This document shows positions 1,661 through 42,100 of a stretch of 64,000 nt of DNA, one piece after another. The position numbers were made by a program, and so were the translations under genes. The notes beneath the pieces are model-generated. The model saw only the letters and a program-made list of their open reading frames with translations, searched no databases and was not told the origin of the DNA. Source of the DNA: Fimbriosthenelais zetlandica (Eukaryota). Positions within the stretch are counted from its first letter, which is position 1, and the number at the start of each line of letters is the position of its first letter. The stretch lies in the NCBI GenBank assembly GCA_977030845.1, contig OZ365111.1, forward strand, positions 6,138,001-6,202,000, written 5' to 3'.

Positions 1661-3886
1661 GTGTAATGGATGATCCCATGTTGACACACGCTGCAACTCC
1701 CAACAGATGTAGGCGAGTGATAATCCAAATAGTTGCTATATTGATTGTCATGTCAATTATTCAGGCTTCCCCAACCATGGAGCTGAAATGTGGATCAGGA
1801 TAAGCAGCCACATGTATCCACTCTATATGTGTATCCAATCTATATGTGTATCCACTCTATATTCTATAGAGCAAACTAAGTAACGAGATACCCACAGTTC
1901 CTGTTGGCTTCATTTCTTATGAATTTACCTGAAAAGTGGTCGGGAGTATGTATTTGCCTTTGACTGTGGAATATTTGAAACTGGGTGCATATATAATATA
2001 CATCTGTTTTGTACGGTTCACTCAAAAATTCAGAATCATGTATATCTGTGTGCATTTGACCAGCCTAGTATCACTTATCATGGAAGTTTTTCCATTGGAT
2101 TCTAGAAAGGAAAATATATGCTACATTTCAACACATCAGAAGATTTCCAAACTAGTGAAATCTTGATGGATCAATAGCCTCAGATTCCTTGGTTCAATTT
2201 TGCACCTAGAGCCTTAACCCCAGCTTTGTTTATCCATCCCCCGCACTAAATTTCCCCATTCTGACTCCCAGCGTGGGAGATGGTCCTCCCAGATCATCAG
2301 ACTCTCCCAGTTTTTACCTTGCACCAATACCATCAGCATATATACATCTTCCAAGTTCCTCCCACACAGAAAGTGCAAGGAATTATTTGCAATATTGGAG
2401 AATGATATTGTAAAGGTTTGGACATGGTCTATGTACTATGTATGCTGTATAAACGGAGTGACCAATAAGTGGCGCCAAGTTAATGGCTTTAATGTGAAAT
2501 ATACATGTTATATGACCACCAGCCTGCACTCCCTACTCCCGTACCCCATGCATGGATTTTTAACATGTCGCACCCCACTTCAGGTCAAGCTGGAGCGTTT
2601 CCTCTGTTGAACATCTATGCATGCAGTATGCATTACACATGGTTGTATCCAGGTACCATCTACAGTATGAGGCAAAATATTTGCTCATTTTTTCACTATT
2701 TGCAACATACTTTGTTTAATCAAATCAGAAGACAGTTACATCTACTCTTACAACATCCTTCTGGTATCACTGTCACTGTCACAACACGAGGCTCCGTCAT
2801 AATTATAAGTGAAAAATTGTTGACAGTGACGTAAAACATACATACAACTCCCCAAAAGATCATGTTTTTTCAAAGTATATAAATCATTTTTGGTGATACT
2901 GTATCGTGAGTTCATGTCAATATTGTGACATGAGAAACACACATTACACGCTCAATTATCCTGACGTGAGGCTATAGTAAGATGGGGTATCAATCAATTT
3001 CACTACTCAGAATGAATTACACGTTGAATACCATATATACTCATGGGTATAGTCTTTCCCTGAGTTTGTATTGTCCCCACCAATACCTCTTTGTAATATT
3101 ATTATAAAGAACCGTTCTGAATGCTTCCTTAAAAAAATCGGACGTTAAAATATTTTACGTTAACTTTTTCAGTAACAACCCTGTATTTTGAGAAGGCTTA
3201 TGAAATTAGGTTGAAGCCTTTATGCTGAATTGCACCATTAATTTTTATGACATGAAATAAAATGATCTTTCTTACAATGTCTACCCCTGGTCTTGGGTAG
3301 AAACAAATATTCCCAAATGATTCTTTATCCCAGATTGTATAGATTGTACCACCCAAGTAGCCACAAGGAAAGACAAGTGTCTAAATAATTGGTGCTAATA
3401 GATTACCTTAATGAAGCATATGGTACAGTATCGTGGCAGAATATACTCCGTACCACCATATGTTTAGTGTGCAACTGCATCAGTCTGGGAAGCCTTTGAT
3501 GCTATGCTTTGAACGGGAAGTGACTGAGAGTATAGTGCCGTCTGCCACCACCACCCTGTTGCCTCTGCAGCATGATTCTATTGATTCTCTATCGCTGTAG
3601 TGTGGAGAGAGAACCTGGCCTGGCCCTGTACACAATGGCCGCATCTGACCTCTGACTATGGCAAGAGATGCACTGATCTGGCAGCATTTGTGGGCCATTT
3701 AAAGCCATTGATTTATTTAGTCATTGATGAAGTGATTGTGGTAAAAATTCCGACTGAAGTGCCTTCATACTTATCATGATGGTTCTATGATACCAAATCC
3801 ATTTAGATTCCTAATTGGACTGGCCTATAAATTAACCTGGTATCATTTCTGAACGCTGGTGCATCATTAAATAATCAAGTTCTGCT

Positions 3887-4091
3887 TAAGCCAGGTCTCC
3901 ACTGCTGAGATTAGTTTGCGACACTACTGCGACAAAGGGATGCTTGTGTAGGGATACAATTTATAGATTGTGGTCCAAGTTTCCAAGGCCTTAAGGCCGT
4001 CCTCCAGTGGTAAATTTGCCATTGGAACACTAGCATTACATTTGTCGCAGAGGTGTCGCAAGCAAAATCGCAGCAGTGGAGTCCCAGCTTA
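3887..4091. mobile_element. Palindromic MITE, family A (about 50-bp imperfect TIRs)
   Basis: aagccaggtctccactgc...tttgcgacac...gcgacaaa versus tttgtcgc...gtgtcgcaa...gcagtggagtcccagctt; central ccaaggccttaaggccgtcc. Confidence 0.75.
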
Positions 4092-7000
4092 TCGAAAGAT
4101 TAGTCATCATTTCTGGAAATATTAAACATTAAGGAACATGCCATATAGTCTCCCAATGGCTATTGCTGGCCTTTGAGATGAGTACCCATGGAGAGCCGAC
4201 AGCGTGTTTCCTCCTAGTCCTGAGGGCATTCATTTTACGGAAATCTTTCTCCATTTATCCAACTGACCCCATGTCTTAAACCGACAGAGATTTTACTCAA
4301 TTTCTCCAACTGACCCGTCACCCCCATGTCTTAAACCGACAAAGACTGTCATTATAGGAATATTACAAAGCACCTTAAGTACAACAATTGACGTTTCCAT
4401 GGTAATTACATGGTAGCGGCCAGCCAAGTTGAGGTCACTTACTCATTGAGAATTATTCATGTGATTGTAGGTACAATAGTGACCACTAGGCCATGGCATT
4501 GCTCCCTCTTACATTTGAATAATGCCTTTAATCCTGGTCTGGGTCATGTATAAATAACTATGTACATTCAATCCCCGAATACCGATCACTATTCACTCTG
4601 GAAACCAGGGCAATTATCGGGGCAGTATCATATTAAAGAGTTCTTTTGGGATTTTTGTTGTAAATTAATGGTGTCAATGTACCGAATGATTGGTGTCAGT
4701 GGCTGCTCTTGTTGTCCCATTTTGGTAAAATACTGAACAGAAGAGACCAATCTTAATGTTAGACAAGGGACCAGCCAGGGAATGAAATAACACCAATTTC
4801 CTGAATAAAAGACATAAGGTTGTACAACTGTATATCAGTTGTACAGCAATGCCTTATACTATGGTTGTACAATGAGCTGACCATATATGACAGGAGGCAT
4901 GTCTTCCCCCCTTTCAATGGAAGTGGTCCCTTTACCACTAACCAGTATAATATCATGGTCAGTTGGTATCTACTGTGGGTCGGTTTAGTGTGAACATTCC
5001 TTGATCTGTCAGAAATATCGGTCGGTCTGTATTTGTAGCATATTCCCACCTCAGTCATGGAATGTGTTCACATTGTATAAGCATCACAAAACTATGCATG
5101 GGGGAATAGTATATAATATCGCCGTTTGACCCCTGCTTGAACTTGCCTATGGCTTTGCAATAACACCACCAATATGGAAAGTTTATATCAATTATTGGTG
5201 CATGGGCATCAGACTTAAATCTATTTATAGACCTTATTTATACCAGAACGTCTGATTTGATGTTGTCGTTTGGACTTTGAATTTCTGATAAAAAAAAGTC
5301 CACGAACTTTACAAACCGAGTTAGTTCAGGTCATCAACCCAAATGAAATGGTCCTGAACTGCTTCAAAACATTTGAATTTATCAGCGTTTCTAAATATTT
5401 GACGACCGCTATTAAATATTTATGAAAATTAGATTTTATGGTCACTTTTTAGTGCATTGAATTTGTAATATGAACTTCAGAAACAAGTTCCTTTCTTGTG
5501 CTATGGCATGATTCTATGTCATAGATTTACCATGGCCTTTGGATTTGGAATTGAAATCCTGAGGAAATTCTTCGGACGAATTTTTTTTCTGAACTAAGAA
5601 AGAATGAAAACTGAACTCGACTTGATCACAGGTTTTCCCTCAGGCCGTGGGATCACTCCTCCGAGTCCTTTTACTCTGAGATTAGTCCTACTTCCAATGG
5701 TTGACCACAATTTACTTAATCGGGGGAAAGTAGGGAGAGGGAGTTTATTTATGGCTTGAATCCCAACGTGAATCTGTCCAGCGGAATTATTTGTCTGGTC
5801 TGTCAAGACTAAAAGGATTTGTGGGGAATAATATATTCCCGGTCCAAGTTAAATAAATCTGACCCTCGCTCGCCTCACTTGACGAGAAATCCACAGAGAG
5901 GATTTATAAATGAACAGGAGGACCGTTCCCATGGTTACCCGAGCTCCGGCGAAAATTTCAAATTGATCGGCTGATATTTCATTCTGACCCTTTTGAGAGT
6001 ATCATTTCCCCCATTGAAGTGAAATCATGCTACTGACAGCCATTTCCCTCTTTGAAGTGAATTCGTAGTTGGCCTGGGCATGCCCAACGTTGGGACTGGA
6101 AGAATTAGATACTGCGTGAAGATACATTTGATTGATTGATTGATTGATTGATTTGATGGATTTATTGGAAAAGTTTTTTTTTGTAATGACATGGACTTGT
6201 TCGGTTCTGATCGTGGCCACCATTAACATGGATTATTGATAATGCTGAACATCGCTCATTCACTTATAAATGTAATTTAAAAAAAATGATAAAGTCCCAT
6301 TTATTAATATGATAATTAGAACAAAAAGTGGGTTGGGGATGGATGTGGCGTCGGGGCTAGGGGTGGGGGTTAGAGTTGGGTGGGGGTGGAGAAGAGACTG
6401 GCGTGATGCTGGAGCTGGGAGATAAGAGGAAGAGGAGGGGTGGGGAGAGAGAAGGGGATATTGATATCACCCTAGTGATAGCCTACGCGTCTCCATGGAG
6501 ATGGAACATGCCATGCATACCAAGAAAAACAGGGAGTCTGGGGAGGACATGGTCAAATCTCAGAGGGGGGCGCCGAGGTGAAAATGGGGCGGGGCCAGGG
6601 GATTGGATCTGCTTCACCCTAGTGTACCTTTATGATCCGCGGATAATGGCATCAAAGGGCAGGCAGTTTTTTTTTCGAGTGAAGGCATCGAAGCAAAACC
6701 CGTGGGGCAATGGCATTTTATCAGATGAATGGTTATTGTTCTGTTAATAAAAAGGCCGGAAGGGAAAGTTGGATGGCTTGGGAAAGCTATTTTAGCCATG
6801 AACTGGATTCTGGATGAATTGAAACTAGATCAAGTGTAATCATCAGTTTCTATTCTAGTGACTGAATTCAGAAAAAAAAATATCCCAAATTAAGAGCCAT
6901 TTTCCATAGAATAAAGCTTGATTTACAGCACGATAAGCTGCATACATGTACGTAAAAAAGTCTAGAAAATAGGATGCATACATGTAACTAAAAAAGTAAA

Positions 7001-8189
7001 CATTTTCTATCCCAATAGTGAAGTTCCAAAACCGAAAAACTTCTAATCTTTGCATAGTATATTTGAATTCATTCTCCTCCACAAGAACCAGTGATTCACT
7101 CCAACCGTCGCCAACAATTTGTGTTGAGTTAAAATACAAATTGTAGGTTAAACATACTTTTATCTTGCGAGGCGCCATAAAAAGGCATTTTGTTAGGCAG
7201 AGTAAACTGTTGGAGAGGTTCACAATGTTGGTGTTGGTTATCATAAGGGACCTGTGAGTGTGGATAGAGTGGAGAGTGAGCGTTCTCACATAGTGATAAG
7301 CTATGTCTATATTACAACCATCTCCCTTCATACCTCATGCTTTCTCACACGGGATCCAAAGTTCAGACTTGTTATCCCCCCCCCCCACCACCCACCCACA
7401 CCTCCAGCCCACTTTCCCACTACACCTCCACCCCAGCTGCCCCTCCCCTTCCCAACCCCTCTCCATACACCCCCCCCCCCCGCCCCCCCGCCTCCCCCAA
7501 AACACCATGCCCCGCGTTGACAGCCGCAGGGCTTGATCTACCCTGTTTTCATAATGTAGCACACATTTTCCATAAAAAGAAAAAAAAAACAATTTTTGAA
7601 AAAAATCCTCCAATCATTTTCTTTGCTTCAGGGAATCAATGTGTATTTAATTACGTTCATATGTTATACCAATGAAGGCTCGGGCTCAAAATAAAATATA
7701 AAATTGAGATATATAGAGCTATTGCCAAGCTTATAAGCTACCCTAACCCGGTGAGTTTAATCGCGACTTTACGGTAAATAGCTCGGCCTAGACTTTGGCT
7801 GATCTCATAAATAAGCGAGATGATTTAATGCTGATACATGCAGTGTTAAAAAACACCGCCAGCCCGTGGCATCATTTCTAAAAGGCTAAAGCCATCATGG
7901 AATGAAAACTTACAAATAAATAACATGACAGTCCTCCAGTCAGGACACGTTGAATGATTCATGAAAATAATTATTTTCATTTTATCTGACAACATTATGT
8001 GGGTCGATCCTCCGATAGTATATATCCTAGGATATATAAAACCAAGTTTTACGAAAGTAAATGTAAAACTAACTGCAGCTCTGTAGAGATGAGGTAATTG
8101 GCCCCGAGGCCACTGTTATAGCATTAATATAATTAGTTGTGGCCCGAGACCGCACAAGGGACGGTTTAATAAAAAAAATATGCGAGATC

Positions 8190-36100: not shown

Positions 36101-39100
36101 TCCGACCAGTACAGACAGATGCACGAGTACGGCAACAAGGTGGTGGAGGGACAGACAGACGTGCAGCACATGTTCCTCAGAGAGGTAAACCCCCACCACC
36201 CCCACCCACGGTGCCCCCTTCCCCCCCCCCCCCCCCCCAAAAAAAAACAACCAAAAAAAACCAACAAAACCTCATCTCCCTTATTTCAGGGTCCCCAGTG
36301 ACTCTGGAAATGAGGGAAAACCTGGAAAATAAGTTTCATTTTTCCAGACAGGGAGTACTAAGGGAGTTTGAGAAAAACTTGAAAAATCTGGGAAAACTCA
36401 GGGAATTTCAGGGAACACTGACTCAGAAGGATATCTAATTGACGCATACAATCCCATGCCCGCCACTAAAGTTCAGGATGCTTCATATTTATATAATATC
36501 TTATGGTATTTCAGGGCTTACTTTATCGGGGGAAAATCAATTTTCATGAACTGCTGGGAACCCTGTAAAATTTGTCCGGGTGTGGAATAATTAGTTATAA
36601 ATTGTTCTATAATACATGTAGCTATCAATGGCTTTATAAAAATCTAGTAAAGACTTAAGTGACTTATTATTATATATAATCTAATAATTGCCCACTCTGG
36701 CCGAACCCCCAAGAGCCTGTTTCAAAACAAATATAAGCCATAAACTTAGCATTGCTCATAGTAATATTCCTTCCTCCAGCTTATTATTAAAATTGTTTGA
36801 TTAAAACAAAATTAAGTTCTTAATCGACTTAATTATTTTCTGTTAACAGCGTCTCAAGGCTCTGGACGACGGGTGGGCTGATGTACAGCGTATGTGGGAG
36901 AACAAGCAGCATCTTCTCTCCCAGAGTCTCAACCTCCAGGTTTGTTGATATTTTTTACTTGGAACAATAATATATTTTTCCAAACGTTTTTAGCTCACTC
37001 ACCAGAGAAGTCATTGTTAAAATTTTATTTTTTCAAATTTGTGAAATATTTGACAACATAACTGCAAGATATTCGAACCTTCGTAATAATAATTTAGTAG
37101 ACAATTGTGTGCCGACAGCGTGTTATCTCTCGTCCTGAGCGAATTGCTAACTGGAGTTTAGATATCATAATATTCATAATTCTTGTTAAATTTTTTATTC
37201 ACCTTCAGTACCGTGACGAATGAATGAGAAAAAAGTTTAATCAAATCATCAAATTTCAGGTATTCCTGCGTGATGCCAAACAAGCGGAGGTTCTGTTGAG
37301 TCAGCAAGACAACTTCCTATCCAAAGAGGAGGTTCCTGTAAGTATTTATATTCATTTTAACATAACGATTTTTATGCTGTTTTGGGGTTCATATATATGT
37401 AAATAGGTTGAAGTTTGTTGCCAAAAGTCAACTTGGACTGTCAGTTGAAAAACGGTCCAAATTTCTGAAACAACATATTGAGGGGTAATTGTTTAGAGGA
37501 AAAATGAAATGGGAACATCAGAAAAATACTTTTTTTTCCACAGCAACTTATAATTTAGCATTGTCTTTGGCATGTTGTTCAAACGTTTCCGTAGTATTCT
37601 ATTTGGCGGTTTAGAAAAAATAAACTTTTATTTTCCCCAGCTCTGATTGAATTCCTTCTTGCCACGCTGTCTTCATTTTCCCTCATGATATGCCTCTCAT
37701 TTTCCCCCCTCTTCCCCATCCCATGGACTCTTTATTTCCCAGAAATTCCCCCCCATTGTCTCTACTGGCCTGTTTCATATTTAGAGTGGTCTTTTCCTGT
37801 AGTTTATTCATTGTCGACCCCTCATTGAAGCTGCTATTTGTATCAAAAACCGAGCAATTCTTTTGATGAATGCCCCCAAAAATATTCAAAATTTTGCCTA
37901 TTTTTTTTTCGCTCTCAATGTGCAACTTGTTGATATTTACAGCATATTCATTTTCATATTTTTTTTATTAACCTAATTCAGCTTTGATAAAAAAAATTGA
38001 ATTTACCAAGTATGTTTTTTTATTTACCTTTTATTATTTTTGAGCAATACATATATTTTTGCTGATTATCTCAGGTGCTGAAAAAATGTATAGCTTGAGG
38101 GACACAGTGTTAATTGATATAATTAATAGAAAAATTATATTTTTGGACAGTTAGTTGATTCCAATAGCAGCATTTCATATTATATATACATTAGCCTTGG
38201 ATGGCATTGCTCATGTGGCTGTGTTGACGCAAAAGTAGCTGTGGCTTTTTACATATATATATCTCTCTCCGTTTTGTGTTCTGTTGCACAGACTACCCCT
38301 GGACTAGACAAACAGGTAAAAACCACTACCAACACCACCACCACCACCACCACTCCTTCAAGCCATGCTGGCTGGCAGAAATTTATGTCTCATTGTTATG
38401 TTGCCGCCAGATAATTGTGTACTTTGTCATCATGTCCAGCTGTGGCATTTATAATTGGTGCGTGCGTGCGTGTATGTACATCATGTCTTGTCTAATGGTG
38501 TTCACAAACAAAAACATTTTTTTTTAAATGTGGGTGTCATATATACGTGTTTAGAAACAAACCTGCAATCATTCATGCATGTCACTGTTGTTTTCCATCT
38601 CTCAACCTTATTCAGTGTTGATTTGGAGAAAAAAAAATTATTGAAAGTATTTGGTTTTTCCTCTTGTTACTTCTCTCTAAAGACACTTTCTCATCTGGGA
38701 TTTTGTGGGTGGTTTTCCTGGTAAAATGTCGCCCTTGTTAACCCATCCTCCTGCTGATCCCGATTCGTTAAGTTTTAAAGCGGCTCTATCACCGATCTGT
38801 AATGAGGACTATCTAAGCTTGGGATCAAAGCTTAAGAAGTTAACTAACACAAGTTCTAGTCACATTTGGCAGGTGCCTACAAAATTAAGAACAGAGGACC
38901 AAAAGATGAATCCAACAATACATCGAACTCTTTTTTCGTACAAGGAAAAAATCGGCGATAAAGTCGCTTTAAGAACAGAATTTAAGTAAAGCTATGATGA
39001 GAGACTTCAGAAATTGCTTGCCCTCACTCCACTCCCTTGCCCCCTCCCACCAGCCCAGGGGACTGCAGATAGGGTTTTCCCCAGAGGTATTAGGCCAAAA

Positions 39101-42100
39101 TACAATTCATATAAGCCTTTATATAACTAATATTCTAACCTTTTCTGACATTGATCCGGCCGTGGGGACATCTGCCAGTCTGGTATTACCATATACAATG
39201 TGGTTTATTGAGTTACAAATAATCTCAATAGAAATTGAAGTCTCTCATAACAACTCAAACCATTTCTTTATAGAACTCCCCCTCTCCCCTTCCTGTGTCA
39301 AATACAATTTTAATTTTAGTCAATGAAGACAAATTCACCTATTCACCTCCCCTCCCCACACTCTACTCTCTCTTTCCACCTATTTTCTTTACGGTCTTTG
39401 AACTTTTATTTCTGGTCGGTTGTGAGGGTGGGTTTTGAGTTTGAGTGGGTTTTTATGTTTTGGTTTGCCTGACTGTTTCTCTCTACACTTGTGTCGTGTT
39501 TGGAGCCTGGTTGATGATGGCCTGTTGGAGGTGATATGTACTCTAGGTGTTTGTTGTCATTGTGGGCGTCGATCTTTGTTAATGATTCAATAAGAAAAAA
39601 CAAAATAGAACAATAAAAGGTAAGGATTGGTTGGAATCCCAGCGTCTGGCAAGGCTTGGTCATCTCGCCCATCTAGCCTTAGGCCTTGCCAATCAACATG
39701 AATATTTATCTCGAATAAAACTTAAAATTTTGAACAATAAATGATTTTTTAAATTGTGAAAAAGAAAGTTGGGTACAGGTAAAATATATTAAAGAAAAAA
39801 CCCGAGAAAAAATATTTTAAAAAACGGCCTTTGTGTCATTGTAATCTCCTTGAAAAAAGGTCAAAATAGGTCATGGAGAATTCACTTCAGAAAATTAATA
39901 CCTTGCATAAATGGGTCTTATTTCTGGCAATTAATAGGAACTTGAAGGCTATGAAGAAAACTAAGGCTATGGTTGCTGGTCCGAAGCCTTGCTGACCGTG
40001 GAATCCTGGGCCGGCCTTTGTGTCGGCCCTTTGAACTCTGGCAGCTCCTAGTTAATGTTCTGCGTGTGACAAGTTGTCGAGTCCCGGCCCGGCGACCGTT
40101 TTTTGCTGTCTTGCCGTAGTTTGGTAGTACAGTCTTTATTTTTGTTGCAGCTCTGTTTACGGCCACCTCCCAAAGAGTGGATCTTATAAATACGCTCTCT
40201 TATTTTCTTCCTCGTCTTTTAATCCAAATGAGCATGTCTGAATAATGGGCATACTTTATGCGCATTGAAAGATTCGCGGGACACTGATATTACCAATTAT
40301 AATCTGAAGGATTTTTATTTATTTCTTCCATGATATTTCATTTGGATTTTCATTTGTTTATCGTTTGGCTTTGAGAATTGGGATGGAGTGATGATATATA
40401 CTGGTTGTTGCTCTATACTTTTTATCTCCTATTTTTCGCTGTTGCGATTTTTATTTGACTATTGTCATTTGAATTTGTGGGGACAGGTTTGTACTTGTTC
40501 TCAGTCTTGGTTGGCATTGCAGGTCAGATTTGAGTGTTCTGCACATCTATGTGCTGTGAATTATGGAGAAAAAATGCCCCCATATTAACAGCTAACCACT
40601 ATAATGATGCATGCTTCCAGGAATAAAACTGATTATAAAATATTTCAATTATAGAGGCAGCTTCTTTACCTTCACAACCCATAAAAATTCAACGCAAAAA
40701 TAATATTTCGCTCCTTGGTACAATTGCACTTAAAACCTGATAAATTCATGTATCTGGCATCACAGCTTTTGAAAGGTGTATTTACAAAATGCAATCTAAA
40801 TGTCAAAATTCCCTACTGACGTTGAGAATAGAATATATGTCAAAGGCTTTAAATGGTTAAGGCTTCAGATGCCTTATCTAACACTCCATAACCCCCATCA
40901 AAAGCTCTGCGAAAAAAAAAAAAATGCTTGGGCTATCAAAACTAGACACAGCTTATATTCACCGCTGCCGAAAGAAACTATTAAAGCACGAAATCACACG
41001 GAAAACTTTTTTCTTAAATTAATTAAATGTTATGACATTTAATAATGAAAAGCACATTTAATCGTTACACACCTCAGATTTAATACACCTATATTTATTT
41101 CTATATTCATAACATAATGGAAGACAAAAGCAATCTAAAATATTCGCCGCTTTAACAAATATTTTTGGGCAATTAGCTCCAGTAATTCCACATGTGCAAC
41201 AAGTAATATTTTTTAGCTTTGTTAAAATAAATAATTTCACTATTCAAATGTGCAGGTTAAAAACAAATGACTTTTGTAGGGTTTATCTGACAAGGTAAAT
41301 TGCATGTGATGAGATGTTGATGTTCATTGAAATTCGACATTAATTTTCACAAAATTCCACATTTTCAGAGTATGTTTCTTCATCAATAATCCATTATTAA
41401 ATCCTTTCAGCAAACAGATTCATCTCTGAATATGAACTAAATTCCATCCACCTTATTTTGTCTTCTGGTCAGATCTCGATCAAAACAATGTACCCTTCTG
41501 CAAATCAACAAAACTTACAAATTTACAACTAAGTTGATGTATATTTTATTATACATACATTTTCCATTATAAAAGACAACAATCTTAGTGTAGTCTTTAG
41601 CAGTTGCTTTATGGAAGTTCTGGTACATTGGTGCTTGGGTTTGGTATATAAAGTTGAAACGCTGAGATTTTTAAATGATCAATAATGATTTTTCTCTCTC
41701 TGGTTTCCTCTCTGCAGCATTCTCTTGAGGCTGCTGAGAATATCATCAAACAACATGAGGCGTTCATCACCACCATGGATGCCAACGACGAGAAGATCAA
41801 CGCCGTGTTACAGTTTGCCTCGCGTCTACAGGAGGATAGCCACTTTGCTGGCGACAAGATTAAACTTAAAGCTGAACAGCTAGCTGACAGGTTTGTAAAA
41901 ATATTGTACTTTCATTCAGTATTATCTCGGGCCACCCTAGATTAGGGGGTTAATATAATATGTTTTTAAAAAAAAATGTCTCCTTATATTCCCGGTTAGA
42001 ATAAAAGAATCAATTGAAATTTTTTTTTTTCAATTGATTCGGTTAATATAATGTGACATTTTCTTTTGTCCACACAATTATACAGTACCTTAATATATAC

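Follow-up and report, generated by a model that had tools for sequence, protein, structure and literature searches.

A candidate 24-nucleotide cassette microexon in the ninth repeat of beta-spectrin in Fimbriosthenelais zetlandica

In axons and muscle, beta-spectrin forms the backbone of the membrane skeleton, and the repeats that make up its rod are usually regarded as inert spacers. In Fimbriosthenelais zetlandica, a long intron of a spectrin gene contains a 24-nt open segment bounded by AG and GT that would, if spliced in, add eight residues (TTPGLDKQ) to one of these repeats. This raises the questions of whether the segment is a real exon, whether its use is optional and what the added peptide might do. 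We addressed them in a window of 64,000 nt (contig OZ365111.1, positions 6,138,001 to 6,202,000 of the forward strand), in which all coordinates below are numbered unless another locus is named. Comparison with sequences from relatives leads us to a preferred reading, to which we assign a probability of roughly 0.78: that 38292-38315 is a genuine cassette microexon of a single conventional beta-spectrin gene, whose regulated inclusion would add an eight-residue peptide to a loop of repeat 9.

The host gene and the form of the exon

The identity of the gene follows from its two ends. Exons resembling CH domains lie at about 20.9-25.4 kb of the window and exons resembling a PH domain at about 60.8 kb (tblastn), which leads us to reject alpha-spectrin, an identity also considered, in favor of beta-spectrin. 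Full-length orthologues of 2,200-2,600 residues have the corresponding Pfam domains (CH, PF00307; Spectrin, PF00435; PH, PF00169), and the arrangement found, in which two CH domains are followed by a rod of spectrin repeats and then by a PH domain at the C terminus, is that of conventional beta-spectrin. The region is single-copy in the genome, which has one beta-spectrin gene. The features that concern us here are the following, all on the forward strand:

37260-37337 (+): upstream constitutive exon, encoding helix A of spectrin repeat 9; 26 whole codons ending ...SKEEVP, phase 0
38222-38291 (+): 3' splice region; TGC at 38285-38287 (-7 to -5) precedes the AG, and the region also has a CT-rich pyrimidine tract and a GGCTTTTTAC that resembles a branch site
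38292-38315 (+): 24-nt microexon, ACTACCCCTGGACTAGACAAACAG, encoding TTPGLDKQ, phase 0-0
38316-38321 (+): 5' splice site gtaaaa, reading CAG/GTAAAA with the last bases of the exon
38576-38581 (+): TGCATG hexamer of the Rbfox type, at +261 relative to the microexon
41718-41890 (+): downstream constitutive exon; in repeat 9 it supplies the last part of the A-B loop (HS), helix B and the first part of helix C

Because the upstream exon consists of 26 whole codons and the downstream exon starts at 41718, the microexon is in phase 0-0, inside an intron of 4,380 nt between the EEVP and HSLEAAE exons. Both neighbors are well established: the upstream exon and its end point are kept in many genomes, and the downstream exon, which begins HSLEAAEN and matches the Pfam Spectrin family, has a widely conserved phase-0 start. 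The segment itself has the form of a cassette microexon: its 24 nt are divisible by three and within the usual limit of 27 nt, and it is bounded by AG and GT sites. Directly 5' of it stands ctctctccgttttgtgttctgttgcacag, ending in the acceptor ttgcacag/; the acceptor tract reads ctctctcc...ttttgtgttctgt, and the nearest upstream AG is about 50 nt back. The donor, /gtaaaa, is weaker than the neighboring donor gtaagt. Exon, phase, intron and sites match exactly those proposed in a preliminary description of this locus. Form is easily come by, since 72 open AG...GT segments of 9-48 nt can be counted in the same intron; the bare pattern is thus expected by chance, and only conservation singles out 38292-38315.

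Inclusion, skipping and a duplicated gene in relatives

The exon is found spliced into the mRNA of a relative. Contig L081 is an mRNA, its 7,782 nt containing just one ORF, of 2,317 residues; it carries AGTACACCTGGACTAGCTAGGCAG exactly between the sequences of both flanking exons (positions 3779-3802), and its protein (P0286) has STPGLARQ at residue 1197 of 2,317. Skipping is seen as well: the junction EEVP-HS[LV]E occurs in six full-length annelid-clade cDNA contigs (L009-L013 and L030), the included and the skipped forms in this clade coming from different species. We also searched with a relative's cDNA, restricted to the junction region, and parsed 114 full-length beta-spectrins; eight have an insert exactly at the repeat 9 junction and 106 have no insert at all. 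A 91-residue query across the included junction returned no insert-bearing protein fragment of 50-159 residues. The preliminary description had not recognized the insert, and yet annotated isoforms from molluscs, a brachiopod and amphioxus have one at the same site:

Ostrea edulis isoform X3: SSLGLLDKQ (isoforms X11-X17 without the insert)
Aplysia californica X1, X3 and X4, and Physella acuta X3: IAPLDKQ
Lingula anatina: TTIGTLDKQ
Branchiostoma lanceolatum SPTBN1, one model (P0297, residues about 1189-1195): RRSGMDQ

Dozens of other amphioxus isoform models lack RRSGMDQ at the same phase-0 junction, and this insert may be an independent microexon or a homologous one.

A second kind of evidence comes from a duplicated gene. 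In 13 metagenome loci (L023, L026-L028, L031-L033, L035, L038, L041, L043, L045 and L047) the insert is fused into one large exon, reading EEIP-TTPGAAAR-LTPEAAEN with no introns around it; in L027 this exon (4066-6306) is 747 codons long. The TTPG of these fused copies has been kept through synonymous changes. The same samples contain a second gene (L007, L049 and L051-L069) that has an intron of 245-1,500 nt at the site, and no microexon was found in that intron. A PGLD-like stretch in L007 (4190) was considered as a decayed copy and rejected, since splice sites are lacking there and the other loci of this second gene do not have the stretch. In a quick tree, the fused and the microexon-less genes are sister groups within the annelid clade (SH-aLRT 98), with the fused copy on a long branch. 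The simplest reading of these sequences is a duplication after which the included form would have become fixed in one copy and the skipped form alone retained in the other, the fixation probably having occurred by cDNA-mediated intron loss that copied the included mRNA. On that reading an included mRNA would have existed, and mattered. While same-site inserts are already in the databases as automatic mollusc, brachiopod and amphioxus models, this hard-wired paralogue is the most unusual feature.

These observations bear on the strongest alternative, that the exon is real but constitutive in F. zetlandica, being always included and providing no isoform switch. It is in keeping with this that inclusion is the assembler's major path in L081, the only annelid-clade transcript in which the exon was seen, that all three Aplysia models listed include the insert and that one paralogue has it permanently built in. 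We nevertheless consider it unlikely, in view of the six cDNA contigs that skip the exon, the many full-length orthologues without any insert and the Ostrea models, which come both with and without it and are the one same-species pair, known from automatic annotation. The setting of the exon, alone in a 4.4-kb intron with a relatively weak donor and with the regulator motifs described below, also argues against constitutive use. Under the preferred reading of a cassette microexon, inclusion in F. zetlandica would most likely be regulated.

Conservation of the exon in related genomes

Genomic contigs of relatives were located through the neighboring exon, and a scan of metagenomes added 72 loci; a 57-residue exon query of the whole library returned mostly genomic exon fragments. 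Orthologous microexons were found at the positions below, where identity refers to the protein of the neighboring exon compared with that of the window:

L005 7476-7499: identity 96%; exon identical and about 70 nt upstream nearly so, the remaining intron aligning at 64-77%
L001 7337-7360: identity 88%; TTPGLDKQ, with 4 of 24 bases different and all four changes synonymous; the sole strong match in the intron is the microexon and about 20 nt upstream (53 nt at 87%, E 5e-12)
L002 2237-2260: identity 81%; TTPGLDRQ; the sole strong match in the intron is again the microexon and about 20 nt upstream (49 nt at 88%, E 4.5e-12)
L003 125-148: TTPGLDRQ
L050 2967-2990: identity 73%; STPGLARQ (BLOSUM score 28)
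L004 8369-8392: identity 67%; STPGLPRQ (BLOSUM score 29)

The last two are too diverged for blastn, and were recognized as 24-nt AG...GT exons in the same intron; the runner-up scores 13 in L004, and none of the 71 other metagenome loci scanned gave a score above 12. The JGI metagenome contigs yielded no match to an exact degenerate DNA pattern of the microexon. Across the genomes the length, the phase, the AG, the GTAA and residues T2, P3, G4, L5 and Q8 never change, giving the consensus [ST]TPGL[DAP][KR]Q at 24 nt throughout, and the substitutions seen in the five other annelid-clade genomes are mostly synonymous. Exon and neighboring intron ends are hence conserved, in six genomes and one mRNA, in the manner expected under coding constraint, and the peptide has been under selection. 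A tree built on 583 aligned columns groups the window and all of these loci in a single clade (SH-aLRT 99) that also contains Ridgeia piscesae, the one annelid in the set that is named. That the segment is a true coding microexon, as the preliminary description held, is borne out by this codon-wise conservation in five further genomes together with the junction in the relative's mRNA.

The same comparison speaks to whether the segment might instead be a conserved intronic element that is never translated, such as a site for the control of splicing or transcription or a small RNA, and merely resembles an exon. Some 40-70 nt of the upstream intron are conserved as well, and there are two more short conserved blocks further upstream, as such an element might lead one to expect. 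We consider it very improbable, however, because the substitutions follow codon positions (as with the four synonymous changes in L001), the 24-nt length and the frame are kept despite the divergence of the bases in L004 and L050, the AG and GT are invariant, the same 24 nt lie inside the ORF of the L081 mRNA, and no Rfam family matches within the 4,380-nt intron. That 38292-38315 is a functionless AG...GT segment, open by chance like the many around it, is scarcely credible, as the other 71 resemble nothing in relatives and this one recurs in five other genomes and one mRNA.

The two blocks upstream of the microexon, 37832-37850 (GCTGCTATTTGTATCAAAA) and 38154-38172 (GTTGATTCCAATAGCAGC), match L001 at 6893-6919 and 7229-7254, and the intron surrounding them is unconserved; they may be candidate elements for the control of splicing.

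The repeat 9 loop, splicing motifs and age of the insert

Several comparisons place the junction in the ninth spectrin repeat, between helices A and B. On the Pfam Spectrin profile it falls at about position 30 of 105, with the eight residues scored as an insertion, and in an alignment to a solved full-length beta chain the region corresponds to residues 1071-1303. A solved two-repeat fragment of beta-spectrin (chain 1s35_A), which from its entry title we take to be repeats 8-9, aligns with a surplus of eight residues in the query. We also predicted folds for database orthologues (P0286 and a skipped form), which stand in for the spliced peptide of the window itself. In a single-sequence fold of the skipped orthologue (pLDDT 71), the junction lies in the loop that connects the first helix to the second. 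For repeat 9 of P0286 with its insert, folded with 24 aligned orthologues (mean pLDDT 90), helices are predicted at 2-27, 40-78 and 84-135, and the loop EEVP-STPGLARQ lies at 28-39, with a confidence of about 54; the insert, at 32-39, has low confidence. The profile, the alignment to known structures and the folds all agree with the A-B loop location put forward at the outset, and suggest that the insert lengthens an exposed loop and leaves the three-helix bundle intact. Splicing-in would add TTPGLDKQ between ...KEEVP and HSLEAAE..., extending the flexible loop from about 4-6 to about 12 residues and, with the bundle unchanged, presenting a new exposed peptide on the side of the rod.

The sequences around the exon suggest how its use might be controlled. 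Exons that depend on the eMIC domain in flies and mammals have a published signature in which a UGC stands near the 3' splice site and both the CU-rich tract and the AG-free zone are long (10.1101/2021.02.24.432780), and all three are found at this acceptor. The TGC at -7 occurs in five of six genomes, L004 being the one without it, and GTTGCACAG or TTTGCACAG in the acceptor region is invariant in five of the six. Downstream, a TGCATG of the Rbfox type is present in all six genomes (at +261, +164, +207, +63, +61 and +87), an outcome with a joint chance of about 8e-5 given the hexamer density of each locus, within a limit of 270 nt that was set post hoc, after the data had been seen. Of the motifs pointed out in the preliminary description, the TGC by the acceptor and the downstream TGCATG are thus conserved, but the CCAC run with its YCAY motifs, taken there to be of the Nova type, is not: the first 100 nt downstream contain 9, 5, 0, 2, 4 and 6 YCAY in the six genomes. 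We do not regard regulation by Nova as supported, because the run is a species-specific simple repeat. This (ACC)n-like repeat occupies 38322-38355, directly after the donor, and is absent at the orthologous position in L001 and L002.

In the mechanism that we propose, recognition of so short an exon would be aided by the conserved branch-like site, the long CT-rich tract and the UGC by the acceptor, as in the Srrm/eMIC signature, and the conserved UGCAUG downstream would act as a further enhancer, of the Rbfox type. The combination of an eMIC-like acceptor and a downstream UGCAUG points to use of the exon in neurons, and perhaps in muscle, as a prediction from these motifs. A matching factor may be encoded in the same genome, where an exon at G000:C11:15909256-15909330 (L082 1501-1575), on the same chromosome and about 9.7 Mb from the window, matches the Pfam family SRRM_C at 31.8 bits compared to a cut-off of 27. 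The exon reads ...SPSHLDRRRITR, and is probably the eMIC-type C-terminal region of an Srrm234 splicing factor.

The inserts of other phyla allow the exon to be dated. Those of molluscs, the brachiopod and amphioxus are 7-9 residues long and lie at the same position, after the ...K[ED][ED]xP of helix A of repeat 9. The lophotrochozoan ones (Ostrea, Aplysia, Physella and Lingula) end in LDKQ, as does TTPGLDKQ, and this common ending indicates that the microexon is very probably older than the divergence of annelids, molluscs and brachiopods. The inserts outside the annelid clade, known from automatic gene models, differ in their length and N-terminal half and have no TPG, and that of amphioxus has only D and Q in common with TTPGLDKQ, making its homology uncertain. 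A broader reading, which we offer tentatively and with more doubt than confidence, is of an ancient beta-spectrin isoform switch that goes back at least to the ancestor of annelids, molluscs and brachiopods, and perhaps to that of bilaterians if the amphioxus insert is homologous, and was resolved into two genes by duplication in one annelid lineage. If so, the two forms would be functionally distinct enough for a duplication to resolve them in this way. The question has a wider interest: that annelids, molluscs and brachiopods have retained a loop insert over several hundred million years, and that it became a separate gene in one lineage, suggests that this side of repeat 9 does something specific to one isoform, for instance in binding, phosphorylation or flexibility. 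Such an exon is easily missed in annotation, and offers a precise experimental target of 24 nt in spiralian models.

A literature search found no paper describing a beta-spectrin microexon, and the nearest counterparts are in alpha-spectrin. These are a 15-nt exon in C. elegans spc-1 (PMC7706725) and a microexon of sptan1 that has been removed in zebrafish (PMC12626420). Like the TTPGLDKQ exon they are very short in-frame spectrin exons, with the exon and the adjacent intron ends strongly conserved; they differ in belonging to the alpha chain, in lying in other repeats and in having been observed in RNA, whereas the TTPGLDKQ exon is known in its own species from the genome. A similar picture emerges for the microexons controlled by the eMIC of Srrm234/SRRM3/SRRM4 (10.1101/2021.02.24.432780), which share with it a length of no more than 27 nt, the UGC, the CU-rich tract, the AG-free zone, a branch-like site and a cytoskeletal host, though this likeness is one of sequence features, with the UGC at -7 missing in one of six orthologues. 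Exon E35a of Ank3 (ankyrin-G) is reported to be a deeply conserved microexon specific to neuron types (PMC12713133); it belongs to the same membrane skeleton, but to a different protein and to vertebrates.

Two minor observations concern the remainder of the gene and its surroundings. In the stretches 1000-1800 and 7200-7620 of the window, several reading frames on both strands are open over long distances and encode low-complexity sequence rich in Pro/Ser/Leu or Gly/Arg/Glu; these stretches are simple-repeat DNA upstream of the spectrin gene with no obvious gene of their own. The intron 36943-37259, between the exons 36835-36942 and 37260-37337, is missing in several relatives, where genomic fragments (P0179, P0181, P0186 and P0192) read through the site, and it has been gained or lost within the clade.
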